64,000 nucleotides of DNA from Macrostomum lignano (GCA_002269645.1 NIVC01000875.1:124001-188000); one strand, 5' to 3'; positions 3,736 to 40,575 are shown, numbered from the stretch's first letter. The notes: generated by a model not told the origin, from the letters alone. A program made the numbers and translations.

Positions 3736-4491
3736 ATGGACTCAATGACAGCTCGGGTGCCAGCTGGAGAATACCGCTGCGACATCTCCGATTTCGGCTG
3801 CAGATTCGTGTCCAACGGCCCGCAGTCTGAGACCCAACACTATGAGTCCCCTGACGGCAGGCGTGAGCACATACGCTTGGCGAGCGACAAGCTGCGCAAT
3901 CTTCAACAGACAGTCGATCGCTTGAAGCAAAGCGTCAGGCAAAACCAGCAGGAAATTGATAGAAAACAGTTGGAAATCGACCAGCTCAATAGGAAGCTGC
4001 ATCGATTGGAGGCTCACACCGAGCGCGTGATCTCCGTGTTCGAGCTGAGCATCCGGGATCTGCTCGCTGAGAACCCCGGCTGGCACAACTGCCTCACGCA
4101 AGAGTTCGGCTACGGCCTGGACATTCAGACCAGCCTGCTCGAGTCTCCGACTGGCGCCGAGTTTCGCTTCCGGCTGCGGCTGCGACCGACGCCGCACGAC
4201 CGAACTCTGCGGTGGCCGTTCCGGTCGACTGTGCGGGTCGCCGTTTTTCCTCCGGACGGCCACCGGCAGCTTCTTCTGGAAGGGAGCTCGGTCACTCTGC
4301 TTCCGGAGAGACTTCCGGCCGATCAGCGGAGGCTGCTGGAGAGACCTGAAGCAGCTGGAGTTGAAGAACGGGAACGTAATTCCATTGAGATTCGAGCTCC
4401 GGCTCGACTCAGCAGGGCCCAGCTGCTCAGTCTGCCTGATGGGAGCTCCTTCGCTGCTCGGGTGGTCCTGCTGCCGAAAGGAGCTGAATAA
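3736..4491 (+). CDS. Short TRAF-like adaptor (single partial TRAF zinc finger, coiled coil, MATH/TRAF-C domain; no RING), 251 aa
   Basis: N-terminal C-x6-C...H...H (CDISDFGCRF..QHYES..EHIRL), a heptad-rich coiled coil (KLRNLQQTVDRLKQ..LEIDQLNRKLHRLE), then a MATH-like region containing HDRTLRWPFRSTVRVAVF, which matches the TRAF motif D-x-L-x-WPF-x3-V. A possible splice acceptor TTTTCAG lies at 3692-3698. Confidence 0.75.
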   Translation: MDSMTARVPAGEYRCDISDFGCRFVSNGPQSETQHYESPDGRREHIRLASDKLRNLQQTVDRLKQSVRQNQQEIDRKQLEIDQLNRKLHRLEAHTERVISVFELSIRDLLAENPGWHNCLTQEFGYGLDIQTSLLESPTGAEFRFRLRLRPTPHDRTLRWPFRSTVRVAVFPPDGHRQLLLEGSSVTLLPERLPADQRRLLERPEAAGVEERERNSIEIRAPARLSRAQLLSLPDGSSFAARVVLLPKGAE

Positions 4492-5745: not shown

Positions 5746-8700
5746 ATGGCAGAGCGAGGGCCAACACCATTTCCTGACGAAAGAGTAAGTAAAATTGAGA
5801 GAGCAAATTGATATCCATGAATATTTTTACGCTCGATTCCAGCTGAAAGAACTCACTCACATTTTTGAATGTGCAGCTTAGGTGCCTCAATTGAAGTTGC
5901 AGAAACTCACTCAGCCGGACCCCAACAACCGGGCAAGCGTCGGAGACTCACCAGCCGATCTCCAGACTCTCGCCCAGCTCGTCATCCGAGGTGACTTCGG
6001 CCGGGTGCGGTGGCTGGCAACGCGCCAGCTGGTCACCAGCGCTGATGCAGCTCGTCGGACCGTCCTCATGCTGGTGGCCGACGCTTCTGAGACTCTCGTG
6101 CAGATTGAAAAGTGCATCTTGTACTTATTTGAGCTTGGCGCGAACCCCAAGGCGGCTGACGTGAATGGCGACACGGCTGCGCACCTGGCAGCCCGGCGGG
6201 ACCACCTGCGGCTGCTGACGCTGCTGTCGTTCGATGCGAAGTGGCTGCGGAACGACAACGGCGCCACTCCGCTGATGGAGGCGGCGCGGACTGGAAGCTG
6301 GAAATGCGCCAAGCACCTGCTGCACCTGCTCAGGCAGTACAGGTTCAATGAGTGCAGACAGCACGGAAACTTGAAGAGGTCGCGGCTGCTCGGACTGCAG
6401 AATCCTGAGGGTCGGACGGCGTCGGGCCTAGCGAGGCTAAGCGGCCACGCAGAGCTGGCCAGCTACATCGAGCGGTGAGTGAGCAGTTCGCTGCTGTGTC
6501 CATCAAGTTTTGCAGCATTCGGCTGGGGCGGCCAGAGCTGCAGTCTCAGGCCAGCCAATCAGAGCCAGTCAGCTGAGCTTGTCTCTGACTGACTGCTTGA
6601 TGGACGAGAGCTGTGATTGGCTGGCTGCCTCCCAGCTAATGGGGTGCCGGTTGATCTCAGTCGAGAATGGAAGCTGTAGGGCCTCGGTGTGCAGTGAGAG
6701 TGTGCGGGTTGAGCTGCAGATGGAGAACTGGGAGGCTGTGCGTGAGTGCTTTATGAGACATTGCGAGATGGAAGGAAACCCATGCTGCAATAATGAAGAG
6801 TTGCGTGTAAGAAGTCGGATGTGATACTAAAAAGATTGGTCTATAGGTATATATAAGTATGTCATATATTTTAGAAAAATAGCTTCTTTGAAAGAAGAAT
6901 ATGAAAAGAAGCATCATGTCAAACATAAAAGTGGCGTCATGTCGAACGTAAAAGATTCATTTGGGAAGATTCATTTTCAAGATGTCAGGGCTCGGGGAAC
7001 TACTATAATGCTGTGACTCTGAAAGAATTGCCAAAGCTGGGGAATTGTTGGGATGCCAAGGTTTATGAATATGATGCACTTTATTTAATTAGTTGACGTT
7101 CCCTGTCCCCTGCGCATGGCTCAGCGTTAGTTTCTGATCGCATTTTTGTTTAATATCGACATTTATCAAATATTCCAAGTATAAGATGACACCCCCAGAC
7201 TTGTTTCTTTGGCGCAGTCGCAGTGCAGTCGGCCTGGAAGCGCAGTCCAAAGCTATTCTTTACGCCATAGGCAGCAAATTTGGGGTGTTAGTATTATATT
7301 TGAACCTAAGTATGACTCAGCCAGGCGATTCAATACAATTCGACATGGAAGACGGTTTACCTTCCGATCCTGGCGATTTTGAGACCCAGATATGGAGGTT
7401 TCTCCGGATCTACTGGACTTTCTGATACAAACAGAAAATGAGTCAGTGAAAATAAGAGACTATTTCAGACACTGACAGAAGCGGACTTTCAGCCAGAGAT
7501 TGAGGAGATCCCTCCCTCGACAACAAGAAGGAAGGCAGAATGGGAAATCCAAATCTTTCGAGACTGGCACTACGAAAAAAGCATCTCGTGGTCCATCTCT
7601 AATGGTTTTGGACGAAATGTTGAAAAGTGAGCTGAACTTTCTATTGAAGCCGTTTGTCCTGGAGGTGTGTACCAAGAATTGTGAATGTTACTCTGCGAAG
7701 GACATTAGGCCCGTTCGATAAAGCCATCGTAAGATAAGATCGTTCTCCGCAGTGTAAAAGTTCCGACGTACGATCGAACTTACGCTACGACAGCTTTATA
7801 GTACGACCCCATTTACTCTATGATTCAGTACTATACTCAACAACATTAAATAGTCGCCACCTTTGAGAGTGCGCCGTAAATTCTAGCTCAAGTATTGACT
7901 TTTGAGTGACGCAAGTTGCGTTACGTGACGCAGAGTGTAACTGGGTGAGAAGGTATTGGGAAGAGCCGAGGGTGAAGATTGGGTGGATTGAAGCTTCCGA
8001 CCGGTTTTCATTGTTTTTTCAAGCATTTTTTTCACATCAAAATGATTGCCCAGGTGATAGACGCTGGTCGAAAGACACTGCTCACTGGGGCAATGGGTGG
8101 CGACTTTTCAATGTTGCTGAGTATACATGCAGAATACGGTAAAAAAGAACTGGAGCTTGTGGAAGGACGTCGCTTTTCTGGAGAGCAGACGTGCTCTTGA
8201 TGCTGCAATGAAATTATCAACCAAGGATGGCAAGATATGTGAAGCAGCGCTGGATTCTGCCGCTGTACTTATGACTAAGTGACTATTTTTTTTATTAGAG
8301 GCAGGGGGGTTGTGTGCACCCTGGCGCACTTTAAGCGATATAGGCACACAACCGGCGAGAGGCACTACTGCCCATTCCGCCGACTCCCCTGAGAGCAGGC
8401 ATACAAGCGCGCGGATACGTACTCAGGCACACACTCACACAGGAGTGTACAGCGGCCCTAACTTTATTTATCGTTAGTAGAGTCGCTCGCTTGGCGAGAA
8501 GAATAAATAGAAAGCTTATTGTCAATGCTGCAATTCTTGACTGAGTGTGTCACACGCTCGAGTCTCCGGAGAGTCTTTTAGCTTTCTATTTATTTATCGT
8601 TAGGCATGTACACTTCACTGCGCCTTGGGGGGTTGGCTCTCAAGGCCGTTAATTGCCAAGCCAAGCCGAGCCAATCAGAGCCAAGCCGAGATTCCAATTC

Positions 8701-11700
8701 AGCCCCAAATTAATGTGACTGCACTTGGAATCGAGCCTGGGTCGCTGGCACACCAGAGCAGCTGCGCTACCGCTGGGCTACGGCCCCCCTGACTAAGTGA
8801 CTAGCTGATTGACTATTGAAATATTGACTGTACATCCAGTGTACCCACCACCCCGATTTCGTGCCCCGTGCGCCCCGCAACCCCAATGCGTTAATAATTA
8901 TATATTGAGCATCGTTTGTGTTAGCATCGTTTATGAATAATATATCGAGATTAAAACATCGTTTATTCAACCAAATCATCGTGATACTTAGTTTGAACTG
9001 TTAGTTAAACGACACGACGACAGTATGTATGGAATGATTTGGACTGACAGACTGACTGGCTTTTTATGTTCTGCCAGGGAAGCCTCTATGGTTGCTGCGC
9101 ACCCCATGAAAGGACACTTACCCGCCCCACCCCACTCCACTATACGAGTTTAGGGGCATGGTATAGACAAGGACGACAAGGGTATAGAATGAAATGGTGC
9201 TGTTGCTCATCGATTTCTCGCTAGAGAAGTTTGTACGCGAACTTTTGTAACACCTGTCGTTTTTTGTAGCTTGCTAACAGGAATGTATATATACACAGCC
9301 GGAGCTTCTGGAAAAATGGATCTCTGCAATGCAACGAAAGTGGACAACAGCAGAGTTGGAGTAGTTTCGCAGCGATCTAAAGCACAACTACCGGATCTGC
9401 TCGCTGCATTTTTCGGAAAGCTAAAGGTTTTTTTGTAACAAACTCTCAGGACTCCAACTCTAGACGTAAGCGCTCCGCATTTGAAAATGCAGATGGAGAA
9501 GCAAAGAAGCTGAAAAATCGACGGTTGAATTCTGATGCCGAACCCAGCATCTTTACAAAAGCGCAATCCTACTTGAGCAAAACTGTTCCTGAGGAGCGAC
9601 CTACCACAATGACATCTGCTCAGACCAGGCGAGAGTCGCTGCTCGGCGAGGAAGAGGCAGAAACATTTTGAAGTCAAAACTATCTGAGAAATGAGCTGTA
9701 GCATTGATTTATACTCTTATTAGACTTAGCTTTTGTTTTATAGAGTCATGTAAAGTGCTTTTTTATACAGCTTGCCCCAGCACTTTTCTACTCTGTAGGT
9801 AAGTTAATTTTACTCTTTTTTGCTGAAGTATCACCTAAGGCCAATCATTTTATTTTTTGTTTTACTATCTATTATTATTATCTATATTACAGCGCGATGG
9901 GTTGTAAAGTATTTTTCTGGCACTAACACAACGAAAATTTTTTAATAATACAACTTAACCTCGGAGACCTAAAGTTGTGAATGTTTTGGGTTGAATAGTG
10001 CAAACCGTATCTTTCTATGACTTTTAGTTAAAAAGTTACCAGTCATAGAAATGAAACGTTGCATTCATTCACTGCTTTCTGATTGGGCTTTTACCCCTAA
10101 ACATGTATGCTGCCTAAACTAGTGTCCCTTCCTGGGGAGCGGAGCGATCATACTCGTAGAGGCTTCCCTGGTTCTGCATTAGCTGATTTCACGGCCCTTC
10201 ACGGATTTTAAGAAATATTTCCTGGCCCAGCCTAGCCATTATATAAAATGCGTTACATACCATAGAACTGGACTGAGTCATGTCGTTTATAACTGCTCGA
10301 TTTAGAGTCAAGACTGAGAATCGCACGTGAAAGCGCGGTTCGAAATTTTTTCAACGCTTTTTGGATAACTGATTTTCATTAAATAGAAAAAAATCGCTTT
10401 CTGCAGAATACAAGTAAGCTTTGCGGAATTCTGCTTATCGGCAGATGGCTACTGTACCGACCAGAGCTCGTTAAAGCTATCAGCAAATTTCCAGCGTCTA
10501 AAAATTATTACGGATTTTCCAGCTTTCTTTGGTCTCGTGAACCAAGTTGGAACATTTACTCAAGAAGTTGCGGAGATAGCAGGCCCGCTGAGACCGCTGC
10601 TATCAGAGAAGAATATGTTTTAGTGGGTACATGAACAGCAAGAGGCTTTGGAAAGGCCTGCAGCAACCTCGCAAACACGCCTACCCTTGCCTACTATGAC
10701 CAGCGCAAACTCACGGCCTTGCACACAGATGCATCCCGGCTTAAGGGAATCGGATTCTTGCTCAAGCAGAGACAAGCCGATGGAAGCTGGCCCGTAGTCC
10801 AGGCGGGATCCAGATTCATCTCTGATACCGAATTTAGATACGCATTGATTAAGCTGGAATTGTTGGCCGTGGTCTGAGCGACTCAAAATTTTAAGCTTTT
10901 CCTAGAAGGTCTGCCTGAATTCAACTCATCATGATGCTACTAAATGCGGAACTGGACCCAAGTCTGCGTAGGGCGCATAGCGCATCAGCCCCAAAACACA
11001 ACACATACGCTGTTGCTTCCCTAATGGGTAGCGCTGGTTGCTAGTTAATGGTCCAAATTTATAATGAAAATTTAATCCTACAACTTAAAATTTATTTAGG
11101 CGATTAAAGTTTTCGGATTTGAGAAAATTGCAAATTCGCTGCTCATTTTTGCTGTTGCAGGGAGATGCGGCTGGTTGTGAATGCAGTTGGTGAGATCAAC
11201 GGCCTGACAGCCCAGGTGAGCGGCATCTGCGGTGCCGATGCGGCTGCAGCTGAGCAGCTGTGCTCAAATTTCCCGCTCGCCTTTTGCAGGTGGAGGCGGA
11301 TCGACAGGAACTGCAGCGGCTGGCCAAGACAGGCGACTCGGCGGAGCTGCGGCGAGCGGCGACCTGCGGCAGCTGCGACCTGCCTGACAGTTCGGGTCGC
11401 ACCGCGTTGATGTGGGCAGCTCAGAACAGCTCGTGCGGTGATGAGGCTCTGTGGGAGCAGCTGGTGCAGCTGGGTGACCCCGCCTGTGCGGAGAAATGTG
11501 CTGACAGTTGCCTGCACCATGCAGTCAGGACTGGCAATTCTGCCGCAGCCTCCGCTCTGCTGGCTGCCGGAGCCTCCGCCAATGCTACGGGTTTGTGGGA
11601 ATGGACGCCCCTCATGGGGGCAGCCTTTGCGCCCCCCGCCACCGCCGCCGCAGTCGGTCGGGTTCTGCTGGACTCAGGGGCGGATTGGAGCCAGCAGGAC

Positions 11701-14700
11701 AAATACGGCATGACTGCGCTGGCTTTCGCCACACAGAAGGGAAAGAGCGAACTGGCTGAGCTGCTGCGTGGGTGAGTTTCCATGGCGACTGAGAATGTCT
11801 CTCTGACTTTGATTTATCATTGATAAACATTATGCTGTAATTTATGATTGAATATTGAACAGCTGACTGCAGTTGCGCTGAGTGGGCATTTTTACATTTT
11901 TTTAGTTTAAATGGGCAGCAGACACTGACTGAGCTGCATTGAGGGAGTTTGCAGTGCAGTTTGACTGCAGATTGCCAGTAGAATATTAATGTTCAGCTGC
12001 CTGCGAGATTCACACTTTAAAAGCGCGAGCTATTTCTTTGTGGCAATTGAGTTTAAAATTCACAAAAATATATAAGAAAATATAGGACCTTAACTTAGCA
12101 CCTTAGCTACAGCTACATAGGACCTTAGCTACAGAGTTCAAACAAACTATAGATTAATAAACTTGATAGAATGAATTGCACAGAGCACGGGTTCGCATCT
12201 GAATTCCCCTGACTTCAAATCCCCACTGCCTATTTAGGTACGACGGAAAAAATTACTTTGACGAGCCACTGGCACTGTCGTGAGTTCCTTCAGCACACAC
12301 AGCTACAGCACACAGCTACAGCACACAGCTACAGCGCACACAGCTACAGCACACAGCTACAGCAAACACAGCTACAGCACACAGCTACAGCACACAGCTA
12401 CAGCGCACACAGCTACAGCACACAGCTACAGCAAACACAGCTACAGCACACAGCTACAGCACACAGCTACAGCACACAGCTACAGCAAACACAGCTACAG
12501 TACACACAGCTACAGCACACAGCTACAACTCACAGCTACAGCATGCAAATTATCCCTCATTGCCTCAATTCGCGTTTCCTCAGACCCAAAGGCCCTCCGT
12601 TCCGGGAGCGCTGGGACGCCGTTCGCCGCATTGGCCGTGGAGGCTTCGGCGAAGTCAACGAAGTTCGAACTGACACGGGCGTCACGTGCGCTGCAAAGAC
12701 TGTCAAACTGCCTGTGCAACTCGGTGATGACCAAACCTCTGTGAGCACAGAGATCAACAGAGCTGTTGAGAGCGAGAGAAACCTGTGCCGACTGCGGCAT
12801 CCCAACATCGTCAGGTTCTTGCACGTCGCTCAGCCGGAGCCCGCCACAGTCGTTGTGTTCATGGAGCTGCTGGACGGCCGTAGCTTGGAGAACTTCATCG
12901 ACAACATGCCGCTGAGCGAGCTGACGATTCGAGACTTCAGCGAGCAGGTGAGCATTGTGCATCCTTGATGCTACTGTTCCATGTTCCATGAATGATGGCT
13001 GCTCACTGACCGACCGCTCGCAGATCTGCCGCGCGCTGCTCTACCTGCACAGCCGGCAGCCGCCCGTGATCCACAGAGACATCAACTGCTCAAACATGAT
13101 TGTTTGTGCTGACAACACTCGAATCAAGCTGATCGACTTCGGCCTGTCAATCAAGCTTGAGTCAGTCACCCACGTCTCGGACTCCAAAGCCACCCCCAAA
13201 GGCACTCTGAACTTCTTGGCTCCGGAGCTGCTGGCACCGGAAGAGTCGGACAGCCCGCGGTACAGCAGAGAATCGGACATCTGGGCGTTCGGCTGCTCGG
13301 TCTTCCAGATGGCCTCGGGCAAGCGGCCCTTCGCTGAGCACAAAATGCCGCACACGCTGCCCGAGAAGCTGAGAAGCAGCGGCGCCCCCGCCCTGCCGAC
13401 TTGCTGCTCAGCCGAGCTGCAGGACTTCTACAGCCGCTGCACGGCCAAGGACCGCAAAAGCAGAAAGTCCGCTCTGGAGCTGATGGGGCACGAGTTCCTT
13501 ATCGTCAGGTACAAATGTACAGTAATTCGGCTAGACTTAGGTACCTGTGCGATATGATGCTCACGCAGAGGTGAGGCCAATTTCGCACTTTCCCATCAGT
13601 AGTCACGCGGCTCACTGTGCTCACGCTAAAGATGCGCCGCCTAACTTGAGCAGTGAGCATTGAGAGGTACTATCTTGAAGCTCAGAGAAAAAAGTTGCTC
13701 AATTTGCTTTAAAAGACAGAAGACCCGCGTAGCTAAAAACAGTTTGATTGAGTTTCTGCGCATCTGTGGGGCTGTTATGGCAGCTGAGTTCCATTGAATA
13801 TGAAATACAACCGATTCCTCTCATTGATGTGCCTCCCATGCATCTCCTCATTTTCGCTTGTCTATCCGGAGATGCCATAATTCTGATGAGCAGCTCAACG
13901 CTTTCTGATTTAAGTTTGAATTTCCCAACAGCCCCATTTTCAGGAAGAGCTGGGACTCCGTTCGCTTCGTTGCAAGAGGATGTTTTGGTGACATCCAGGA
14001 AGTTATCACTGACAGAGGCATCAGGTGCGCCGCCAAGACTCTCAGACTGATAGTGCTGCTCGGCAATCAAAAGGATCTAATCGACAGAGCTGTCGAGAGC
14101 GAGAGAAACCTGTGCCGACTGCGGCATCCCAACATCGTCAGGTTCTTGCACATCGCTCAGCCGGAGCCCGCCACAGTCGTTGTGTTCATGGAGCTGCTGG
14201 ACGGCCAAAGCTTGGAGAACTTCATAGACAACAAGCCGCTGGACGAGCTGACGATTCGAGACTTCAGCGAGCAGGTGAGCATTGTGCATCCTTGATGCTC
14301 CTGTTCCATGTTGCCATGAATGATGACTGCTCACTGACCGACCGCTCGCAGATCTGCCGCGCGCTGCTCTACCTGCACAGCCGGCAGCCGCCCGTGATCC
14401 ACAGAGACATCAACTGCTCGAACATAATTGTTTGTGCTGACAACACGCGAATCAAGCTGATCGACTTCGGCCTGTCAATCAAGCTGGAGCAGATAGTCCG
14501 TCGCCACTCATCTTTCCCGGAGACACTGAAAGGCACTTTGAACTTCATGGCGCCAGAGCTGCTCGGAATCGGCACCCCAGACAGTGTGCAGTACAGCAGC
14601 GAGTCGGACGTCTGGGCGTTCGGCTGCTCGGTCCTCCAGATGGCCTCTGGTACGAAACCTTTCACCAATGCCAGAAGCCTGTGTGATCTGTTCCAGCATC

Positions 14701-14858
14701 TTGACAGGAGGGGCGCTCCCGCCCTGCCAGACGGCCGGTCCGCAGAGCTGAGGGATTTCTACAGCCGCTGCACCGCCAAGGACCACAGGGAGAGACACCC
14801 AGCAAAAAAGCTGTTGGAGCACGAGTTCTTGAGGAAAACTTCTGACTCACGATGTTAA
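5746..14858 (+). CDS. Gene A: ankyrin-repeat (about 8 repeats) plus tandem dual MAP3K/STE11-like kinase protein, about 969 aa, 9 coding exons
   Basis: Manual model: 5746-5784 (MAERGPTPFPDER|gtaagt), 5882-6474 (ANK block 1; acceptor could be 5897; CG|gtgagt), 11161-11215, 11290-11771 (ANK block 2; GG|gtgagt), 12238-12279 (micro-exon), 12584-12947 (kinase 1 N-lobe IGRGGFGEV, CAAKT, ESERNL), 13024-13508 (HRDINCSN, DFG, APE; AG|gtac), 13932-14274, 14352-14858. All junctions are GT-AG with matching phases. Total 2910 nt with no internal stop. Confidence 0.75.
8286..8789 (-). mobile_element. tRNA-derived SINE, complete, with 14-bp TSD
   Basis: The minus-strand head GGGGGCCGTAGCCCAGCGGTAGCGC...GGCTCGATTCC has A-box and B-box motifs, but the acceptor stem does not pair. 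An A8 tail lies at 8286-8293. The direct repeat TGACTAAGTGACTA lies at 8272-8285 and 8790-8803. Confidence 0.8.
9075..10170 (+). mobile_element. Non-autonomous P-superfamily (P/Galileo-like) element with decayed THAP domain, 7-bp TSD
   Basis: Perfect 14-bp TIR CAGGGAAGCCTCTA at 9075-9088 and 10157-10170. TSD GTTCTGC at 9068-9074 and 10171-10177. The internal relic KKWISAMQRKW..*..YRICSLHFSES* ... RRLNSDAEPSIF has THAP motifs with stops. Confidence 0.7.
10520..10930 (+). mobile_element. Degenerate Ty3/Gypsy RT-connection/RNase H fragment (intron 2 of gene A)
   Basis: Hand translation: SFFGLVNQVGTF..LRPLLSEKNMF*W..LAYYDQRKLTALHTDASRLKGIGFLLKQ..QAGSRFISDTEFRYA..LELLAVV*. It contains stops and a frameshift. 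Confidence 0.75.
12290..12542 (+). repeat. CACAGCTACAG(CA) 13/15-bp minisatellite in the intron before the effector module of gene A
   Basis: Direct reading. The same satellite occurs at 28372-28935 and 46482-48790 in reverse complement. Confidence 0.95.
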
Positions 14859-15615: not shown

Positions 15616-16777
15616 CAGCTTGTTTATCTGCACCGCAGGCGTTACCGCCTCTGTTTTCTCTGCCCCACCTCTTTTACTCTCTGCCCTCCCTCAAGCTGCT
15701 CAAAAGCCAATCTGTACTCAAGTTCTGCTATTTGCCATTGTAGGGCGTAGGCCGCGCGCTGCACTCTCTGCTTCACATTATTATTAATGACTCATTCTCT
15801 CGCTTAAACTTGTTTACCAGTACTCGACCAATCGCGCATCGCTTCACCCCTCCCACGATATTGACTTATAAATATATTGAGTAAACAAAGCCATACAGAG
15901 GCCACCTTTTTCGGCACGCAAACCTAGACTTTACATTGGCATCGCAAGCAGTCAGAATGTCTGACTCTCAGCACTAAGTGGCTGCCGTGTTTGTTTAACT
16001 CAACTGCTGAAAAAAGTTTAATGAAATTGAGATGAGTGGGAGAGTGAGATGCTAAAATAGCAGATGCAGAGAGAGTAGAGGCAGCCGCTGCAGGGAGTGG
16101 AGGGTGGCTCAATAAGAGAGATATAGAAAGCAGCTTAATTAGTAGGCGAGCAGCAAACTCCTTGTTGTCAAGTTGCTGTCTATAAACTCGCACTGACTCA
16201 GAGCTGCTGCTGCGGAGCGGGGCTGCGGCAGGGGGTCCGAGAGAGGGCAGGCAGGTGCGGATGGGGCTGGGCTGCCAGCAATTGCACAGGTGTGCAGCCT
16301 GCCAGCTGTGCTGCTTCGTCAGGTAAGAAAAGCTTCGAAGAGAATGCAGTGAACGGTGCTTTGATGAGTTACTGAGCGGCCTTTCCAAGCCAAAGGCAGT
16401 CCAAAGCGGTGCACCCCGGTGATCTGACAAGAATTTCTTCTCTTCAGCAGAGCAGAAGGCGGTCATTACAGAGGCCCAATGAGCTGCTCAGAGCCTTTGC
16501 ACTGAGGAGGCTGGCAGCTCTACATGATGCAGAATGAAGTGGCAATGAGCTTGCTGCAGTCTCCAACAGCAGGCAGTAGAATTTCTAATTAGCCAAAGTT
16601 TCTCAGTGTTGAGAGGTGCGCTTTAAAAAAAACAAAAAGGCAGAATAGGCTCGACGTTCTGAGTTTCAATCCCAGCCCCGGCCCCAGTCTCAGTCCCAGT
16701 CTCAGCCCCAGTCCCAGCATCAGCTTCAGTCCCAAGTTCCTGTCCCAAGCCACAGTTCCAGTCCCAGTCCCAGCCTC

Positions 16778-17740: not shown

Positions 17741-19786
17741 TTTACAGGTTAATTCGTGCTCTGCAAGCTTTTCTCAGGTCCACTGTTATATTTTAGACTA
17801 TCGGCAGATCGCTGCAGCTTCATAATGATTTGTTTTTTTAAGGAGTCTTGAAACATCTTTAATCTGAACACAGTGAGCATTAGGCTCTTCAACAAGCAGA
17901 AGATCGACATCCAAGTGTCTTTTTCATCTCGGGGTCTGCTGTGTTTTTATTGCACACCTCACTGCTTGTACCTTTCTCATTTTCTTCACACCCACTCAGA
18001 CTCCAAACTTTGTTACTGGAAATTTCTTTTGCTATGGAATGTGAGAGTTTTCCAAGCCGCCTTTGTCAAAGTTGATTCCTTTGTTAAAGCATTCTATGAA
18101 AGCGGTTGAAATACATTTGATAATGTGTGTATTTAGGGCTTGTGGTATTAATTTCATGATAAGCCGCAAACAGAGCAGCCCGTAGTGCGCAACAAATGCA
18201 ACGATTTTCACCATTTATACAGGATCATTTGCCTGAAGAGTGCGTGGCGAGGTGCGGCAGAATCAAAAGGTCTCTGTGGTGGGACAGTATAATTTCTCTA
18301 TGCTGAGAGTCACTTTTACTGCACTGTCGAACTGCAATGAGATTGCAAAGATAAGAGAGCAAACTAAAAAACATGTAGCATGTTTGTCTGGCAAAGCGAG
18401 TGCTAGAAACTTGTAGAAATTTGTATCGGGCTTGACGATTTTATACCTAATCAATTTTAAGACAATGAACTTCAATCAAATGAGATGAGACAGCAAAACT
18501 CCGAGATCAGTGATCTCGCTATCAATTATGAGCACCAAAGGAAGCTGCAGAACTGGCTGCATCAACATGACAAGTCATCAGCCTCTCTATCGTACCCTGA
18601 TTTCCACTCTAACAGATTTTAGTTGTTTTAATGTATCTTCCTTGAATAAAACATTATGTAATAGTATAATTTTTAGTAATACGAGCTATGGAATCAGTAT
18701 TCTGTGATAAAGTAGTAGAGTAGTAAAGTGATAGATTGAAGACGCTGGTGCAACTACGGGGACTACTAAATACTCAGAATAGAGCAGTTCTTAAAGAAAT
18801 TAACAGTCCCTGTGCCACTAATACACTGAGGCTCACGTTGCTACTTGTTGTGACGTGACTTCTGACTTCTTATAGACTTCGGCCTAGTTTGCTTTCTGCT
18901 TCTAAAGTGTCTAGGGTTGAAACTTTAGATACTCGGTACAGTATTAAATGCTTGAGACGGCTCGCGAGCTAAAGAATTATATTAAGTTTCTGAAACGGCT
19001 ATGCTCTCGAGTGGCATAAGCTCGCAAACGCTCAAACACTATCTTCCGTCTTTCTTCGGTGCAAAGGAAGACATAACACTACTGATATACCTAAGCGGGT
19101 GCCAGCGCAGATAAGGAAATGATAAGTGAATGGGCCAGCGCAAGCTATGTAGTATTTGACAAATTGAAGTGTTTTATAAATGTGCTTGCTTGAAGAACTG
19201 AAAAAGTAATTACCGGGTGAATGATTCAGAAGTTCCACGCAGGCTCGCACAGAGTCCTAAAGATGCTGCGACTATCGTCTGAGAAGACAGTGTCTGAGAG
19301 ATGCACTGCTCGTGTCTGATTGGCTGAATACAAGCCAGGTATCTCGGTCTCGAATTCTCCTTTATACGGAACGTAAAAAGGACACTGCTGGGACCCGATC
19401 GCATTGACCATGTAGGGACACAGAGGACTTCCGTGTTTTTTCTGAGAGTCTAAGCGAGTGTCTGTACACGGGAGAATGTACTATTATCGAACTGTACTTC
19501 AAATTATCGAATTCTTAGAGAGGACATGACATGTACTTTTACATAGCGCTGAACGGGGTTATACCATAGACTGTTTTCTCCGAAAAATGGCCACTGAATT
19601 TCTAATAAAATCGGCAGCAGCGCTCTTCTGCTTCAGCTGTGCAAGACGCTTTCAACTCGTCGAAGCATCCACCAGATGCCACCGCCCACGTAGTCTGCCC
19701 GAGACAGACCTCTGCCATCATTGCTTCTCTTCAGCTAACTGTGGAACTTCTGCTACTCTTAATTCTGACTGCGCTGGTGCCCTATT

Positions 19787-20200
19787 TTGTGTCCGGTTCT
19801 ATTCACTTGTTTGTGTCCGGTTCTATTCACTTGTTTGTGTCCGGTTCTATTCACTTGTTTGTGTCCGGTTCTATTCACTTGTTTGTGTCCGGTTCTATTC
19901 ACTTGTTTGTGTCCGGTTCTATTCACTTGTTTGTGTCCGGTTCTATTCACTTGTTTGTGTCCGGTTCTATTCACTTGTTTGTGTCCGGTTCTATTCACTT
20001 GTTTGTGTCCGGTTCTATTCACTTGTTTGTGTCCGGTTCTATTCACTGGTTTGTGTCCGGTTCTATTCACTTGTTTGTGTCCGGTTCTATTCACTTGTTT
20101 GTGTCCGGTTCTATTCACTGGTTTGTGTCCGGTTCTATTCACTGGTCTGTGTCCCGTTCTATTCACTGGCTTGTGTCCGGTTCTATTCACTGGTTTGTGT
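19787..20200 (+). repeat. 24-bp minisatellite (TTGTTTGTGTCCGGTTCTATTCAC) x~17
   Basis: Direct reading. Units are head-to-tail without spacers. Confidence 0.95.
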
Positions 20201-20219
20201 CGATTTCAAGAATTTTCAT

Positions 20220-20412
20220 CCATCTCAGAATCTCTCAACATCTCAGAATCTCTTAGCATCTCAGAATCTCTCAGCATCTCAGAATCTCTCAGCATCTCAG
20301 AATCTCTCAGCATTTCACAATCTCTCAGCATCTCAGAATCTCTCAGCATCTCAGAGTCTCTCAGCATCTCAGAGTTTCTCAGCATCTCAGAATCTCTCAG
20401 CAACTCAGAATC
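20220..20412 (+). repeat. 18-bp minisatellite (TCTCAGCATCTCAGAATC)
   Basis: Direct reading. An expanded paralogue lies at 57540-58190. Confidence 0.9.
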
Positions 20413-21884
20413 TTAACGATAAGAGTTTTGCACTCATTTAAAGCAAAATACGAGCAAAATTAATTTCTCAGATCCATTTTTCGGCTTCAAATTCAAACAA
20501 AAATAAGCACCGTTAGCTTTAATGAGTCCTGACAGTAGTATAAAATGGAACCAATGGAATCATGATCACATTCAAGGCGCAAAAGCAGCAAAGGTTGGCT
20601 GAACAGCACTATGGCGCGATTCTTGAACTTTCAGAACTTGCAGTTAAAAAGCCTCACTGTGAGCTCCGCAACCAACTGACAATGTTTATCTTATCACAGT
20701 TGCTTTCGGCCTTGACGTCAGTGTCAGCTGACTCTTGGGCTGAACGCTGCTCTTCTCAAGGATCTCCGCGACTCTCTTATCGGGAAGACCTTTGGTCTGA
20801 GCTCCGGTGCAACTCAGTGGCTCCAATTCTTTCTACAGTGTTTGCCTTGAGGTGCGGCCTGTGGCACTTTTTCCATTTTCGGTCTGGCCTCGCTGCGAAT
20901 CTGAAGCTCTTGTTTGGTCATCGTCTTCGTGAGACACCTCACTGGCACCCCAGTGTCCAGTTCGACCTCCGCCTGCCTCGGTCAGGTGACTCCGACACGT
21001 GACATGCTCAGCCAGGCCTTTGAACCAAATACGAGCGTACATTTTAGGGAGCCCAGGCTAAGCCTTGATCCTACGCCCGACCTGCTCATGGATCTGATAC
21101 TCCCAGACAGCCTCCCAGCCTCTTCAAGTCATGGATCTGACATCCCCAGATAAACTATATAAGCAATGAAAACCAAGCACTGTTGGCTCATGTACAGAAA
21201 TTCTCAGACATTTTAACAGCTAAAGACGTCTTTTCTGATTAAAGCAAAACTCGAACATCACGTGCTTCAGCTTGGAGCAGTCACGAATTATCTAAGAATT
21301 CATACTTTAAGACTGCTTCACCTTGCATTGGGCACACAGAGCCGCAGGCGGGCACCTTTAGCGCCAAGTCGCACTGCAGGCACTGCGGCACTGATAAGGG
21401 GTGCCGAGTCCCCAGAGCAGAAACTGCCTCGAGTCTGGCTTATCTGCTTTATGAGACTTTTGCTGCACTGGGAGAGCAAAAACTGGCATGAGGCGGAGAG
21501 TCTTTCGATAAGATTTGAATAAATGTTTGCTTTTACAAGCAAAACACATTGGGAGGATCTTGAGAAGGCAGCATTGCTTATTCTTGGCATTTATTGCAAT
21601 TGTGCAATAGTATGAAGTGAAATATTTGTGCTGCAATGCATCCGAATGCAACTGTAAGGGCTTTGCTTTCAGTCAATGCGAGCGCAAAGCTGAGGACACG
21701 AACCCTGCCTCCGATGTACAAGTAATTTTTAAATTTAATGTTCTCCGGGGAAAGCCATGCAAACCTTGTGTAACCAATAAGATGCTTCACAGCGTGATTC
21801 CAGCTTTCTGCTTCATCAGAACCCAGCTCAGCTTCCCCATTCCCCATCAGACCTCAGCTCAGCTTCTCTATTCTCTGGCTGGGA

Positions 21885-23031
21885 AATGAGCTGGCTCTAC
21901 TCTCTCTGCAGCTGTCTCTACTCTCTCTCTGCAGCTGGCTCTACTCTCTCTGCAGCTGGCTCTACTCTCTCTCTGCAGCTGGCTCTACTCTCTCTGCAGC
22001 TGACTCTACTCTCTCTCTCTCTGCAGCTGGCTCTACTCTCTCTCTGCAACTTGCTCTACTCTCTCTGCAGCTGACTCTACGCTCGTACTCTCTCTCTCTC
22101 TCTGCAGCTGGCTCTACTCTCTCTCTGCAACTTGCTCTACTCTCTCTGCAGCTGACTCTACTCTCTCTCTCTCTGCAGCTGGCTCTACTCTCTCTCTGCA
22201 GCTTGCTCTACTCTCTCTGCAGCTGACTCTACTCTCTCTCTCTCTGCAGCTGGTTCTACTCTCTCTGCAGTTTTCTCTATTGTCTCTGCAGCTGGCTCTA
22301 CTCTCTCTCTGCAGCTTGCTCTACTCTCTCTGCAGCTGACTCTACTCTCTCTCTCTCTGCAGCTGGCTCTACTCTCTCTCTGCAGCTTGCTCTACTCTCT
22401 CTGCAGCTGACTCTACTCTCTCTCTCTCTCTGCAGCTGGCTCTACTCTCTCTGCAGTTTTCTCTATTGTCTCTGCAGCTGGCTCTACTCTCTCTCTGCAG
22501 CTTGCTCTACTCTCTCTGCAGCTGACTCTACTCTCTCTCTCTCTGCAGCTGGCTCTACTCTCTCTCTGCAGCTTGCTCTACTCTCTCTGCAGCTGACTCT
22601 ACTCTCTCTCTCTCTGCAGCTGGCTCTACTCTCTCTCTGCAGCTTGCTCTACTCTCTCTGCAGCTGACTCTACTCTCTCTCTCTCTGCAGCTGGCTCTAC
22701 TCTCTCTGCAACTTGCTCTACTCTCTCTGCAGCTGACTCTACTCTCTCTCTCTCTGCAGCTGGCTCTACTCTCTCTGCAGTTTTCTCTATTGTCTCTGCA
22801 GCTGGCTCTACTCTCTCTCTGCAGCTTGCTCTACTCTCTCTGCAGCTGACTCTACTCTCTCTCTCTCTCTCTGCAGCTGGCTCTACTCTCTCTGCAGTTT
22901 TCTCTATTGTCTCTGCAGCTGGCTCTACTCTCTCTCTGCAGCTTGCTCTACTCTCTCTGCAGCTGACTCTACTCTCTCTCTCTCTGCAGCTGGCTCTACT
23001 CTCTCTGCAGTTTTCTCTATTGTCTCTGCAG

Positions 23032-23077
<46 letters not shown>

Positions 23078-23203
23078 GCTGGCTCTACTCTCTCTGCAGC
23101 TGGCTCTACTCTCTCTCTCTCTCTGCAGCTGGCTCTACTCTCTCTGCAGCTGACTCTACTCTCTCTCTCTCTCCCTCTGCAGCTGGCTCTACTCTCTCCG
23201 CAG

Positions 23204-23238
<35 letters not shown>

Positions 23239-23242
23239 GCAG

Positions 23243-23275
<33 letters not shown>

Positions 23276-23279
23276 GCAG

Positions 23280-23310
<31 letters not shown>

Positions 23311-23335
23311 GCAGCTGGCTCTACTCTCTCTGCAG

Positions 23336-23393
<58 letters not shown>

Positions 23394-23448
23394 GCTGGCT
23401 CTACTCTCTCTGCAGCTGGCTCTACTCTCTCTCTCTCTCTCTCTGCAG

Positions 23449-23496
<48 letters not shown>

Positions 23497-23560
23497 GCTG
23501 GCTCTACTCTCTCTGCAGCTGGCTCTACTCTCTCTGCAGCTGGCTCTACTCTCTCTGCAG

Positions 23561-23591
<31 letters not shown>

Positions 23592-23747
23592 GCAGCTGGC
23601 TCTACTCTCTCTCTCTCTCTCTCTGCAGCTGGCTCTACTCTCTCTGCAGCTGGCTCTACTCTCTCTGCAGCTGACTCTACTCTCTCTGTCTCTCTCTCTC
23701 TGCAGCTGGCTCTACTCTCTCTGCAGCTGGCTCTACTCTCTCTGCAG

Positions 23748-23782
<35 letters not shown>

Positions 23783-23811
23783 GCAGCTGTCTCTACCCTC
23801 TCTGCAGCTGA

Positions 23812-23842
<31 letters not shown>

Positions 23843-23951
23843 GCAGCTGGCTCTACTCTCTCTGCAGCTGGCTCTACTCTCTCTGCAGCTGACTCTACTC
23901 TCTCTGCAGCTGGCTCTACTCTCTCTGCAGCTGGCTCTACTCTCTCTGCAG

Positions 23952-23982
<31 letters not shown>

Positions 23983-24113
23983 GCAGCTGTCTCTACTCTC
24001 TCTGCAGCTGGCTCTACTCTCTCTCTCTCTGCAGCTGGCTCTACTCTCTCTCTCTCTCTGCAGCTGGCTCTACTCTCTCTCTCTCTCTGCAGCTGGCTCT
24101 ACTCTCTCTGCAG

Positions 24114-24155
<42 letters not shown>

Positions 24156-24180
24156 GCTGGCTCTACTCTCTCTCTGCAGC
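21885..24180 (+). repeat. Compound satellite CTGCAGCTGGCTCTA(CT)n, about 2.3 kb
   Basis: Direct reading. A constant core carries a variable (CT)n tract. Confidence 0.95.
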
Positions 24181-24769
24181 TAAATCAACAGCTCTGAAAT
24201 TAAATACGTGAAAATCGGAAGAACTCAAGACAGGGAATAGAAAAGTTTATTAAATTTTGTATGAAATTTGAGCAGCTCACATAAATATTTGAGCAGATTT
24301 GAATCAAGAAATTGGTTTCACAAATTTGCGAATTCCATTCAGGTCTGTTAAGAATTTCCAGTCTGCTGGAAAAATATCAGCATCTGATTACAAAAATCTG
24401 AAAAATACAACGCCTGTCTCAATGCCTGTCGAATCTTGAGTGTGACTTTTTAGAAATCTTATCTTAAAGCCAAATCAGACAGTCACAGAAAATTAAATAA
24501 AACATTAGAACGTCTAATTATGCTAAAGTACATTGTACAAAAGTGCACAAGTACGAGCTACATCTTTCAGCACTGCAGACGCTGCAAAGGAATAATGGAA
24601 ACGCCAACTGAAGAATCCGAGGGGACTTTTAGTCTAAAGCTCCTAAAGTTCTTTTTAGTAGTCCTCAGCCAAGTACTGTTAGCTCAACTTTCAAAAAAAG
24701 AAATTTTAATTAATAAGTAGCATACAGAAAGATCCTAAAACTTCATAGATGATTTTAAAGCAACTCGGC

Positions 24770-27700
24770 TTAGCGCTGAGAGCCAGAATTTTTCCTCAAA
24801 AAGTCGTGCTCGAACAGCTTTTCTGCCGAGTGTCGCTCCCGGCGGTCCTTGGCGGTGCAGTGGCTGTAGAAATCCTGAAGCTCTGCGGATCGGCCGTCCG
24901 GCATGGCGGGGGCGCCGCTGTTTCTGATTCTATCAGCGACTTGATTAATGTCTTGGGCATCTCTGAACGGCCTCGCGCCAGACGCCATCTGGAAGACCGA
25001 GCAGCCGAACGCCCAGATGTCCGACTCTCTGCTGTACTGCACGCTGTCCGACTCTCCCGCTCCGAGCAGCTCTGGCGCCATGAAGTTCAGAGTGCCTTTG
25101 GGTGACTGAGTGGAGGCTGACATGTGGCTGACTGACTGCTCCAGCTTGATTGACAGGCCGAAGTCGATCAGCTTGACTCGCGTGTTGTCAGCACAAACAA
25201 TTATGTTCGAGCAGTTGATGTCTCTGTGGATCACAGGCGGCTGCCGGCTGTGCAGGTAGAGCAGCGCGCGGCAGATCTGCGAGCGGTCGGTCAGTGAGCA
25301 GTCATCATTCATGGGAACATGGAACAGTAGCATCAAGGATGCACAATGCTCACCTGCTCGCTGAAGTCTCGAATCTTTGGTTCTTCCAGCGGCTTGTTGT
25401 CGATAAACCTCTCCAAGCTTCGGCCGTCCAGCAGCTCCATGAACACAATGACTGTGGCGGGCTCCGGCTGAGCGATGTGCAAGAACCTGACGATGTTGGG
25501 ATGTCGCAGTCGGCACAGATTTCTCTCGCTCTTTACAGCTTTATCGATTTTCTTCGTTTTCGTCTCCTTCTGATCGCCGAGCTGCACAGGCAGATTGAGA
25601 GTCTTGGCGGCGCACCTGATGCCTCTGTCGGTGACAACTTCCTGGATGTCACCAAAAAATCCTCTTGCAACAAAGCGAACGAAGTCCCAGCTGTCCCTGA
25701 AAACGGGGCTGTTAGGAAATTTCGAAAGGGAGTCAGGAAGCGTTAAGCCGCATATTGGAATTTTGACATCGTGAAAGGAATTTGTTGGATTTCATATTGA
25801 GTAAAACTCAGCTGCCGCAGCAGCCCCGCTCCGACAGATTCGCATCAACTCACTCGAAGTGTTTCTGATTCGGAGCAGGGCTTCTGCTTTATCCACTCGA
25901 ATTGAGCACAATTTATATCTTGTAGCTTAAAACTGGTGCTTTAGGGCTCCTTACCGAAAGTATGCAGCGTATAATCAGTTTGAGAACAGTGAGCCACTTG
26001 ATTACTGATAAAAAGTGCAACACTGGTCTCACATCTGCATGAGCGTCATATCTAATCTGTCTATAAAGCTGACCGAATTACTGTACATTTGTACCTGACG
26101 ATAAAGAACTCGTGGTCCAGCAGCTCCTGTACGGACTTTCTGCTTTTGCGGTCCATGTCGGTGCAGCGGCTGTAAAAATCTCTCAGCTCTGCGGACAGGC
26201 CGTCCGAAAGGGCGGGAGCGCCCCTCCTGTCGATCAGCTGGACCATTTCTAACAGGCTTCTGGCATTCGCGAACGGCCTCGCACCCGAGGCCATCTGGAA
26301 GACCGAGCAGCCGAACGCCCAGATGTCCGACTCTCTGCTGTACTGCACGCTGTCCGACTCTCCCGCTCCGAGCAGCTCTGGCGCCATGAAGTTCAGAGTG
26401 CCTTTGGGTGACTGAGTGGAGGCTGACATGTGGCTGACTGACTGCTCCAGCTTGATTGACAGGCCGAAGTCGATCAGCTTGACTCGCGTGTTGTCAGCAC
26501 AAACAATTATGTTCGAGCAGTTGATGTCTCTGTGGATCACAGGCGGCTGCCGGCTGTGCAGGTAGAGCAGCGCGCGGCAGATCTGCGAGCGGTCGGTCAG
26601 TGAGCAGTCATCATTCATGGGAACATGGAACAGTAGCATCAAGGATGCACAATGCTCACCTGCTCGCTGAAGTCTCGAATCTTTGGTTCTTCCAGCGGCT
26701 TGTTGTCGATAAACCTCTCCAAGCTTCGGCCGTCCAGCAGCTCCATGAACACAATGACTGTGGCGGGCTCCGGCTGAGCGATGTGCAAGAACCTGACGAT
26801 GTTGGGATGTCGCAGTCGGCACAGATTTCTCTCGCTCTTTACAGCTTTATCGATTTTCTTCGTTTTCGTCTCCTTCTGATCGCCGAGCTGCACAGGCAGA
26901 TTGAGAGTCTTGGCGGCGCACCTGATGCCTCTGTCGGTGACAACTTCCTGGATGTCACCAAAAAATCCTCTTGCAACAAAGCGAACGAAGTCCCAGCTGT
27001 CCCTGAAAACGGGGCTGTTAGGAAATTTCGAAAGGGAGTCAGGAAGCGTTAAGCCGCATATTGGAATTTTGACATCGTGAAAGGAATTTGTTGGATTTCA
27101 TATTGAGTAAAACTCAGCTGCCGCAGCAGCCCCGCTCCGACAGATTCGCATCAACTCACTCGAAGTGTTTCTGATTCGGAGCAGGGCTTCTGCTTTATCC
27201 ACTCGAATTGAGCACAATTTATATCTTGTAGCTTAAAACTGGTGCTTTAGGGCTCCTTACCGAAAGTATGCAGCGTATAATCAGTTTGAGAACAGTGAGC
27301 CACTTGATTACTGATAAAAAGTGCAACACTGGTCTCACATCTGCATGAGCGTCATATCTAATCTGTCTATAAAGCTGACCGAATTACTGTACATTTGTAC
27401 CTGACGATAAAGAACTCGTGGTCCAGCAGCTCCTGTACGGACTTTCTGCTTTTGCGGTCCATGTCGGTGCAGCGGCTGTAAAAATCTCTCAGCTCTGCGG
27501 ACAGGCCGTCCGAAAGGGCGGGAGCGCCCCTCCTGTCGATCAGCTGGACCATTTCTAACAGGCTTCTGGCATTCGCGAACGGCCTCGCACCCGAGGCCAT
27601 CTGGAAGACCGAGCAGCCGAACGCCCAGATGTCCGACTCTCTGCTGTACTGCACGCTGTCCGACTCTCCCGCTCCGAGCAGCTCTGGCGCCATGAAGTTC

Positions 27701-39796: not shown

Positions 39797-40575
39797 TCTC
39801 AGCGATCTCAGTGAACAGAGACTGGATAATCTCAGTGAACAGAGACTGGATAATTTCAGTGAACAGAGACTGGATAATCTCAGTGAACAGAGACTGGATA
39901 ATCTCAGTGAACAGAGACTGGATAATCTCAGTGAACAGAGACTGGATAATCTCAGTGAATAGAGACTGGATAATCTCAGTGAACAGAGACTGGATAATCT
40001 CAGTGAATAGAGACTGGATAATCTCAGTGAACAGAGACCGGATAATCTCAGTGAATAGAGACTGGATAATCTCAGTGAACAGAGACTGGATAATCTCAGT
40101 GAATAGAGACTGGATAATCTCAGTGAACAGAGACTGGATAATCTCAGTGAACAGAGACTGGATAATCTCAGTGAATAGAGACTGGATAATCTCAGTGAAT
40201 AGAGACTGGATAATTTCAGTGAACAGAGACTGGATAATCTCAGTGAACAGAGACTGGATAATCTCAGTGAATAGAGACCGGATAATCTCAGTGAATAGAG
40301 ACTGGATAATCTCAGTGAACAGAGACTGGATAATCTCAGTGAACAGAGACTGGATAATCTCAGTGAACAGAGACTGGATAATCTCAGTGAACAGAGACTG
40401 GATAATCTCAGTGAATAGAGACTGGATAATCTCAGTGAATAGAGACTGGATAATTTCAGTGAACAGAGACTGGATAATCTCAGTGAACAGAGACTGGATA
40501 ATCTCAGTGAATAGAGACAGGATAATCTCAGTGAATAGAGACTGGATAATCTCAGTGAACAGTGATTGGATAATC
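39797..40575 (+). repeat. 24-bp minisatellite (TCTCAGTGAACAGAGACTGGATAA) x~32
   Basis: Direct reading. Confidence 0.95.

Follow-up and report, generated by a model that had tools for sequence, protein, structure and literature searches.

Tandem kinases are rare in animals. Two kinases per polypeptide are found in JAK, RSK/MSK and obscurin/SPEG, a kinase is combined with ankyrin (ANK) repeats in RIPK4/ANKK1 and ILK, and the tandem kinase proteins of plants include WTK1/Yr15, Rpg1, Sr60 and others. Here we describe gene A, a predicted gene on the + strand of a 64,000-nt stretch of the Macrostomum lignano genome (assembly GCA_002269645.1; this whole stretch is referred to as the window), which shares features with each of these systems. 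All coordinates are those of the window, which covers bases 124001-188000 of record NIVC01000875.1, and addition of 124000 gives the coordinate in that record.

Gene A lies outside the JAK, RSK/MSK, RIPK4/ANKK1 and plant tandem-kinase families. JAK joins a FERM-SH2 region to an ancient pseudokinase, whereas gene A has neither FERM nor SH2, and RSK/MSK combine kinases of two groups, AGC first and CAMK second, whereas kinases 1 and 2 of gene A (K1 and K2) are 70%-identical paralogues. In RIPK4/ANKK1 the kinase is N-terminal to the ANK repeats, an order that is reversed in gene A. The STE11 MAP3Ks (MEKK2/MAP3K2, ASK1/MAP3K5) have HRDIKxxN where gene A has HRDINCSN, and no PB1, SAM or coiled-coil accessory domains are present here. 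The resemblance to plant tandem kinase proteins is only by analogy: in both, two kinases per chain have arisen by duplication in a clustered, fast-evolving family, and the second domain drifts towards a pseudokinase, here in the older paralogue Mlig009993. Gene A differs from them in its N-terminal ANK module and in that both of its kinases keep Lys, HRD and DFG. Its kinases also come from an unrelated lineage: among the solved-structure matches listed, STE, WNK and PLK kinases dominate, the best being STE/WNK, and there is no IRAK, Pelle or RLK.

The closest relatives so far described are flatworm "ANK-caspases" and one "M. lignano caspase with a kinase-like pro-domain", the ANK-caspases being given as restricted to parasitic flatworm species (PMC11463336). 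The two ANK blocks of gene A are 85% (ANK1) and 55% (ANK2) identical to those of P0021, an M. lignano ANK-ANK-caspase, but gene A carries kinases and no caspase; this comparison was made with M. lignano ANK-caspases only. Gene C of the window, together with the annotated ANK-caspases P0021 and P0029-P0032, places ANK-caspases in a free-living flatworm and so qualifies the published statement.

By its collinear similarity and shared exon structure, gene A belongs to an ANK-ANK-kinase family of the type of Mlig034440, which is gene B of the same window (UniProt relative P0002). The two genes are alike in their nine exons, their intron phases, their ANK1-ANK2-mini-exon-K1-K2 order and the IV/S/P sequence at the kinase-kinase junction (here and below a slash within a sequence marks an exon boundary). 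Gene B differs in being annotated and transcript-supported and in having a third, recombinant kinase unit at its locus. All close relatives of gene A are M. lignano proteins, and in a scan of 1.84 billion representatives M. lignano was the source of all ANK-covering matches, among the highest-scoring ones looked up. A literature search for Mlig034440, Mlig009993, Mlig002250 and Mlig013011 found nothing, and we found no paper on kinase-bearing members, tandem kinases or this cluster, nor anything relevant on metazoan tandem kinases with ankyrin repeats. Gene A is a new member of a family whose ANK-kinase-kinase proteins are already public as uncharacterised predictions. An initial annotation of the window had proposed an independently evolved tandem-kinase family, and this holds in that the tandem arrangement is lineage-specific, and therefore independent of JAK, RSK and the plant tandem-kinase proteins; the architecture itself, ANK repeats plus two kinases, was already in the databases (P0001/P0002, Mlig009993, Mlig002250).

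The locus adds an intact unannotated gene to the M. lignano annotation and flags two further unannotated genes, C and D, within 64 kb. M. lignano has transgenesis and RNA interference, and the family offers a young, tractable case for asking why kinase duplicates persist within one chain and how pseudokinases arise.

Exon-intron structure of gene A

The initial annotation had claimed that the apparent ends of the open reading frames (ORFs) in this region are splice donors, and had named four junctions that would join a hidden ANK-ANK-kinase-kinase frame of about 969 aa. These four junctions were found in the sequence where it had placed them, and all four donors are of phase 2:

6474/6475, donor CG/GTGAGT; acceptor TTGCAG/G at 11160/11161
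11771/11772, donor GG/GTGAGT; acceptor TATTTAG/G at 12237/12238
12279/12280, donor TC/GTGAGT; acceptor TTTCCTCAG/A at 12583/12584
13508/13509, donor AG/GTACAA; acceptor TTTCCCAACAG/C at 13931/13932

When the five blocks of that annotation were joined literally, stops and frame shifts resulted, and a nine-exon model was used instead. With four further short canonical introns (5785-5881, 11216-11289, 12948-13023 and 14275-14351) the joined exons form an open frame of 2910 nt, giving exactly 969 aa in the order ANK1, linker, ANK2, 14-aa mini-exon, kinase 1, kinase 2. The features of the model, all on the + strand, are as follows:

5746-14858 (NIVC01000875.1:129746-138858), gene A, whole: nine exons, 2910 nt, 969 aa and a stop
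5746-5784, exon 1: ATG, 13 codons, phase-0 donor AGA/GTAAGT; homologue of the P0001 start exon (gene B 38443-38360)
5882-6474, exon 2, ANK1 block: Ank_2/Ank_4 matches; phase-2 donor CG/GTGAGT
6475-11160, intron 2: 4686 nt, with a retrotransposon RNase H fragment inside
11161-11215, exon 3, linker: 55 nt, ending ..EMRLVVNAVGEINGLTAQ; phase-0 donor CAG/GTGAGC, followed by a 74-nt intron
11290-11771, exon 4, ANK2 block (hypervariable): dN/dS 1.4-2.0; phase-2 donor GG/GTGAGT
12238-12279, exon 5, mini-exon (YDGKNYFDEPLAL): 42 nt, phase 2 on both sides
12291-12543, minisatellite (CACACAGCTACAG)n filling intron 5, immediately before the exon that opens the effector part
12584-12947, exon 6, kinase 1 N-lobe: glycine loop GRGGFG, beta-3 Lys in CAAK; phase-0 donor CAG/GTGAGC
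13024-13508, exon 7, kinase 1 C-lobe: HRDINCSN, DFG, APE; phase-2 donor AG/GTACAA
13509-13931, intron 7, between the two kinase cassettes
13932-14274, exon 8, kinase 2 N-lobe: degenerate glycine loop ARGCFG, Lys kept
14352-14858, exon 9, kinase 2 C-lobe: ends in a TAA stop

All eight introns are GT..AG, six of them starting GTGAG, one GTAAGT and one GTACAA. Two exons have alternative in-frame acceptors. Exon 2 can start at 5882 or, from an acceptor at 5896/5897, at 5897, and gene B takes the downstream one; exon 8 can start at 13932 or, from 13943/13944, at 13944, and of its relatives P0001 uses the homologous upstream acceptor while P0002 shows both. The mini-exon is present in P0001 and P0004 and missing from P0003, its counterpart in gene C has 33 nt, and since it is of phase 2 on either side it could be skipped in frame. 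The C-lobe of kinase 1 includes ESVTHVSDSKATP and that of kinase 2 EQIVRRHSSFPE. The terminal-type tail of kinase 2 (..EHEFLRKTSDSRC and stop) is common to the third kinase unit of gene B and the second of gene D.

A Pfam search of the predicted product gave ANK and kinase families only, with no Peptidase_C14, FERM or SH2. Pkinase scored 315 bits in two stretches (residues 416-684 and a second domain; gathering cut-off 31.7 bits), Ank_2 93.9 bits in four stretches (cut-off 27.3 bits) and Ank_4 64 bits. Gene A is very probably an intact, so far unannotated nine-exon gene of M. lignano with a single predicted ANK-ANK-kinase-kinase product, and the account of gene structure and cassette family given here is to our mind the likely explanation of the locus.

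Splice junctions in paralogues

A tblastn search of the window with the gene A model found three additional family members, genes B, C and D, all on the minus strand. Gene B is annotated, and the locus of its record matches window 48443-14770 with 100% identity over 33,674 bases. Its protein P0001 matches most gene B exons at 100%, and its nine exons are one-for-one homologues of those of gene A. On the - strand, gene B comprises:

24770-38443, gene B, whole (BOX15_Mlig034440g1; P0001, 985 aa): ANK1, ANK2, mini-exon and three kinase units
38443-38360, 38244-37667, 31427-31373 and 31299-30815, then mini-exon 28992-28951: exons of the ANK part, from the mapping of P0001
28329-27966 and 27888-27401: kinase unit K1
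27014-26660 and 26582-26095: kinase unit K2
25708-25354 and 25276-24770: kinase unit K3

The gene A product and P0001 are collinear, with 77% identity over 99% of the length and a gap at no exon junction. At the kinase-to-kinase junction gene B (P0001) reads ..EFFIV/S/PVFRDSW and gene A reads ..EFLIV/S/PIFRKSW. The junction phases recur in genes B and D, as the initial annotation had noted, and a GT donor is kept at the end of every internal kinase unit in genes A, B and D. The transcript-derived model Mlig009993g1 (P0122, fuller form P0276) contains a homologous phase-2 kinase-kinase intron, AG/GTACAG...TTCTAACAG/CCC. Since the same junction is used in RNA-seq-based models of these two paralogues, the ends of the ORFs are splice donors and not stops, and the reading first proposed for them is borne out.

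The assembly was annotated from RNA-seq with StringTie/TACO, after which TBONE cut the models at spliced-leader and poly(A) sites that had been mapped by experiment (PMC5730564). After this cutting P0001 is the single gene "g1" of its unit.

Kinase domains

The closest solved kinase structures, aligned over the full catalytic core at about 30% identity, were MAP3K2 (3e-27) and MAP3K5/ASK1 (2.5e-26), followed by WNK1 (5e-25; WNK1/3 about 1e-24), MAP2K5 (2e-23) and STE20s (about 1e-22). The kinases had been called MAP3K-like, and MAP3K2 does give the best score, but with WNK1 close behind the label is nominal only; placement of the gene A kinases as STE-like and nominally closest to MAP3K is weakly supported by these scores. 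Both K1 and K2 keep the beta-3 Lys, the alphaC Glu, HRD, DFG and APE. The catalytic loop is HRDINCSN throughout the subfamily, the usual Lys being replaced by Asn, and the more distant P0131 has HRDIKCSN. The glycine loop is GRGGFG in K1, and in K2 it reads ARGCFG (gene A), ARGFFG (gene B) or VRVFFG (gene D). In K2 of Mlig009993 the catalytic Asp and the DFG Asp are lost (HRN, GFG), so that this protein is a kinase-pseudokinase pair.

Non-synonymous (dN) and synonymous (dS) divergence were estimated by the Nei-Gojobori method; for the kinases, the seven units present in genes A, B and D were aligned. Kinase dN/dS was 0.22-0.7 throughout, and 0.28-0.7 for the kinase parts of gene A against those of B and D, from which both kinases are judged to be under purifying selection and to have been retained in all three genes. 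In the flanks of the units, which have diverged by 30-45% at the protein level, dS between K1-type and K2-type units was 0.57-1.06, and between units of the same type in different genes 0.10-0.27. Because K1 and K2 differ by more than the genes do, the two-kinase arrangement was in place before A, B and D diverged.

Variation in the ankyrin blocks

ANK1 of gene A has 82-85% amino acid identity to ANK1 of genes B and C. Pairwise dN/dS was 0.84-1.30 for ANK1 and 1.16-2.0 for ANK2, at a dS of about 0.07-0.11; in contrast to the kinases, the ankyrin blocks show no purifying selection. Between genes A and B 26% of ANK2 residues differ, with a dN/dS of about 2 (one-sided p=0.03), and non-synonymous divergence in ANK2 exceeded divergence in the adjacent introns (9.0% vs 3.5%, p=0.009; 13% vs 2.9%, p=0.006). 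Column entropy was compared by a Mann-Whitney test in an alignment of 12 close paralogues, and was 1.08 bits at ankyrin positions 2, 3, 5, 13, 14 and 33 vs 0.38 bits elsewhere (p=3e-6). These positions make up the target-binding face, and it is they that are randomised in designed ankyrin repeat proteins. Almost all of the signal came from the four ANK2 repeats, and two ANK1 repeats were nearly invariant. The pattern fits a putative conserved scaffold combined with a diversifying recognition surface.

Cassette recombination and proposed effector exchange

Each of the cassettes, ANK2 (537 nt), mini-exon (42 nt) and two-exon kinase (about 849 nt), has a phase-2 intron on either side and a length divisible by 3, so that it can be duplicated, deleted, skipped or swapped without loss of frame. 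Within the kinase units, the core from SERNLCRL to DFGLSIKLE, including its 76-77-nt intron, is near identical in all units (dS 0.06 between K1 and K2 of gene A), and the intron itself (12948-13023 and 14275-14351 in gene A, with homologues in B and D) is about 97-100% identical among them all. A homogenised core and intron between diverged flanks point to concerted evolution by gene conversion. For this reason a neighbour-joining tree of whole kinase domains, which put the origin of the A/B tandem inside a single-kinase clade, was distrusted. The AG/GTAC...AG/CCC intron common to gene A and Mlig009993 argues instead for an older common tandem.

In gene B, bases 28130-26290 are exactly the same as bases 26824-24984, giving a 1306-bp period with 2.4 copies over 24984-28130 (- strand). 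Its middle kinase unit joins a K2 N-lobe to a K1 C-lobe, the kind of hybrid that unequal crossing-over should leave. P0001 carries two kinases, the UniProt-derived P0002 three; the third unit of gene B is due to an unequal crossover of very recent date or else to the assembly, and with 100% identity an assembly artefact is possible there. The same explanation for the two kinases of gene A was ruled out, as 30% of residues distinguish K1 from K2.

Through unequal crossing-over and gene conversion among the cassettes, one-, two- and three-kinase copies arise. Genes A (12291-12543, about 250 bp), B (28939-28370, about 570 bp) and C (48793-46481, about 2.3 kb) all have the (CACACAGCTACAG)n minisatellite in the corresponding intron, where it may provide a substrate for ectopic recombination that swaps effectors; exchange at this minisatellite-filled intron, before the first effector exon, would have produced the caspase-bearing paralogues. 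A regenerating flatworm model thus has a cluster of rapidly diversifying ANK-sensor-like proteins with an interchangeable effector end, which may be a single kinase, two or three kinases, a kinase-pseudokinase pair or a caspase, and the exon-phase and recombination mechanics behind this variety can be read from the sequence. These comparisons show the family of gene A to be tandemly clustered, Macrostomum-restricted, fast-evolving and built of in-frame cassettes.

Alternative readings of the locus

Several observations weigh against a single tandem-kinase product of gene A and against parts of the account built on it. Gene A has no annotated protein or transcript; its best relative is 77-80% identical and none exceeds 80%, no protein match of at least 93% was found on gene A, C or D, and the record calls one gene in window 14770-48443 and none at the 3' end of gene A. 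P0001 has two kinases against the three units at the gene B locus, and in an assembly from short reads exon skipping looks the same as repeat collapse. As all cassettes are symmetric, single-kinase isoforms could arise by skipping. The loop HRDINCSN is without the usual Lys, so that the catalytic competence of the kinases is only predicted. Finally, the dN/dS above 1 in the ankyrin blocks is marginal (p=0.03), and relaxed constraint or mosaic gene conversion could contribute to it; since the flanking introns clearly show such conversion, the ANK pattern is no proof of positive selection.

One reading, which we consider unlikely, keeps gene A as a single gene but treats its kinase cassettes as mostly alternatives, the main products being single-kinase ANK-ANK-kinase forms made by skipping or by intron-retention termination after kinase 1. 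It would draw on the symmetry of every cassette, on the absence of the mini-exon from P0003 and on the presence in P0001 of only two of the three units of gene B. Retention of intron 7 would bring a stop after 1-16 codons (past the kinase donor, read-through lasts 16 codons in A, 11 in B and a single codon in D), P0010 ends in an internal-type tail (..ALELMGHEYLA), and about 30 of the 38 M. lignano relatives in our family survey have one kinase. However, K1 and K2 are joined in frame in two transcript-derived models, and the K2-type N-lobe (WDxVRFVARGxFGDIQEV) always stands behind another kinase and is the sole kinase in none of the 38 relatives. Moreover, purifying selection has maintained both kinase types in A, B and D from a time before these genes split, and AATAAA and ATTAAA, sought in intron 7 (13509-13931), are absent from it.

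It is improbable to a greater degree that gene A is a silent or recently dead duplicate whose frame is intact through youth. Its absence from an RNA-seq-based annotation and the ANK dN/dS of about 1 or higher are compatible with this, as are the decay of its neighbour gene C, which has lost its ATG exon and acquired an in-frame TAG, and the extensive recent duplication in the M. lignano genome (PMC5730564). On the other side, all 969 codons and 16 splice sites are intact, and in a neutral-substitution simulation run on the 969-codon frame it stayed open in 4% of trials at 3.5% divergence and in 0.9% at 5%. The kinase dN/dS of 0.28-0.7 against B and D also speaks for constraint, and the ANK variation gathers at binding-surface positions and is not evenly spread.

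The very unlikely reading is that the modules form an operon-like unit in which spliced-leader trans-splicing at internal acceptors gives separate ANK and kinase proteins, the outcome that the initial annotation had set against its own model: 38.8% of M. lignano genes are trans-spliced, multi-gene precursor mRNAs make up almost 7% of assembled transcripts (PMC5730564) and a good acceptor stands at the start of each module, but in no kinase cassette does an in-frame ATG precede "VVVFMELL", a stretch 3' of the glycine loop and the beta-3 Lys, the read-through tails behind the donor lack conservation and in gene D a foldback element is inserted in that interval, the internal units have a conserved GT and no stop at the homologous position, the junction-spanning residues are conserved among paralogues, and TBONE, which cuts at mapped spliced-leader sites, left gene B whole.

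Proposed working

STE11-type MAP3Ks are activated by proximity. In a tentative model of a regulated tandem-kinase sensor, which we put forward as possible but on balance doubtful, the ANK1 block of gene A would be a conserved scaffold and the hypervariable ANK2 block a surface for recognition of a ligand or partner. Binding at ANK2 would cluster or release the STE/MAP3K-like kinases and so lead to trans-autophosphorylation. Kinase 2 would probably regulate kinase 1 or pair with it as a built-in dimer partner, a role suggested by its degenerating glycine loop and by the outright pseudokinase in the older paralogue Mlig009993. In the caspase paralogues the same recognition logic would be routed to proteolysis, giving a sensor family of the stress, immune or cell-death type. 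An "ankyrin-gated" kinase activity, as first suggested for this gene, is thus proposed with low confidence from the architecture and the evolutionary pattern.

A more speculative extension, less likely again and drawn by analogy, would see in the cluster an animal equivalent of the tandem-kinase or NLR-type immune receptors of plants. It would be a birth-and-death family in which ANK2 reads non-self or damage, the output is a kinase-(pseudo)kinase or a caspase, and new specificities come from shuffling of phase-2 cassettes.

Neighbouring genes and other relatives

The caspase on gene C and the three kinase units of gene B had not been reported in the initial annotation. The remaining family members in the window, both on the - strand, are:

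45510-50953, gene C: ANK1 50953-50360, ANK2 49873-49258, a 33-nt mini-exon, the minisatellite intron, and caspase exons 46458-46108 and 45869-45510
61780-64000, gene D (5' part beyond the window): K1 C-lobe 64000-63576, an intron, and K2 62719-62362 and 62285-61780, with glycine loop VRVFFG

Both caspase exons of gene C match Peptidase_C14 (E=8.5e-20 and 8.8e-27). Deletion has removed the ATG exon together with the first intron, and an in-frame TAG lies in ANK1 at about 50923-50921, from which this unannotated ANK1-ANK2-caspase paralogue is probably a pseudogene. In gene D the intron between kinases 1 and 2 contains a foldback element resembling a miniature inverted-repeat transposable element (62852-63280, 429 bp), with 140-nt terminal inverted repeats that are 99% complementary.

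Elsewhere in M. lignano, P0020 and P0133 have an ANK-kinase-caspase architecture, P0145 and P0146 a kinase-ANK-caspase architecture, and P0131 a long ANK-kinase-kinase architecture. Mlig009993 (NIVC01001483.1:57826-79108; P0122/P0276), a more divergent paralogue, carries a short ANK block and then two kinases. In Mlig002250 (NIVC01001141.1:12899-18850; P0131; several loci) about 15 ANK repeats precede two intact kinases (HRDIKCSN); as no intron separates the kinases of P0131, this tandem probably arose by a duplication of its own.

The large intron of gene B contains a Ty3/gypsy-like long terminal repeat (LTR) retrotransposon (33451-37201, + strand), antisense to gene B, with open frames for gag-zinc knuckle, protease, reverse transcriptase, RNase H and integrase. 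A similar element is represented in gene A intron 2 by a 52-aa RNase H fragment at 10719-10874 (Pfam RT_RNaseH, E=5e-9). The homologue of this intron is about 490 nt long in gene C, and about 6.2 kb in gene B, where it holds the full LTR element.

Just 5' of gene A, a 251-aa ORF (3736-4488, + strand) gave a weak, sub-threshold match to TRAF/meprin MATH (E=1e-4; 22.9 bits vs a cut-off of 27.4) and may be a TRAF-like neighbour. A Pfam scan of the ORFs at 1236-1787, 15927-16466, 19587-20438 and 34299-34874 identified no family. Between the genes the window is rich in dense minisatellite arrays with periods of 13-78 nt and lengths of up to 2.3 kb (21889-24181, 39805-40582, 51786-52669, 56754-57479, 57543-58195 and others), which explain the blocks of strong GC and AT skew in its composition profile.

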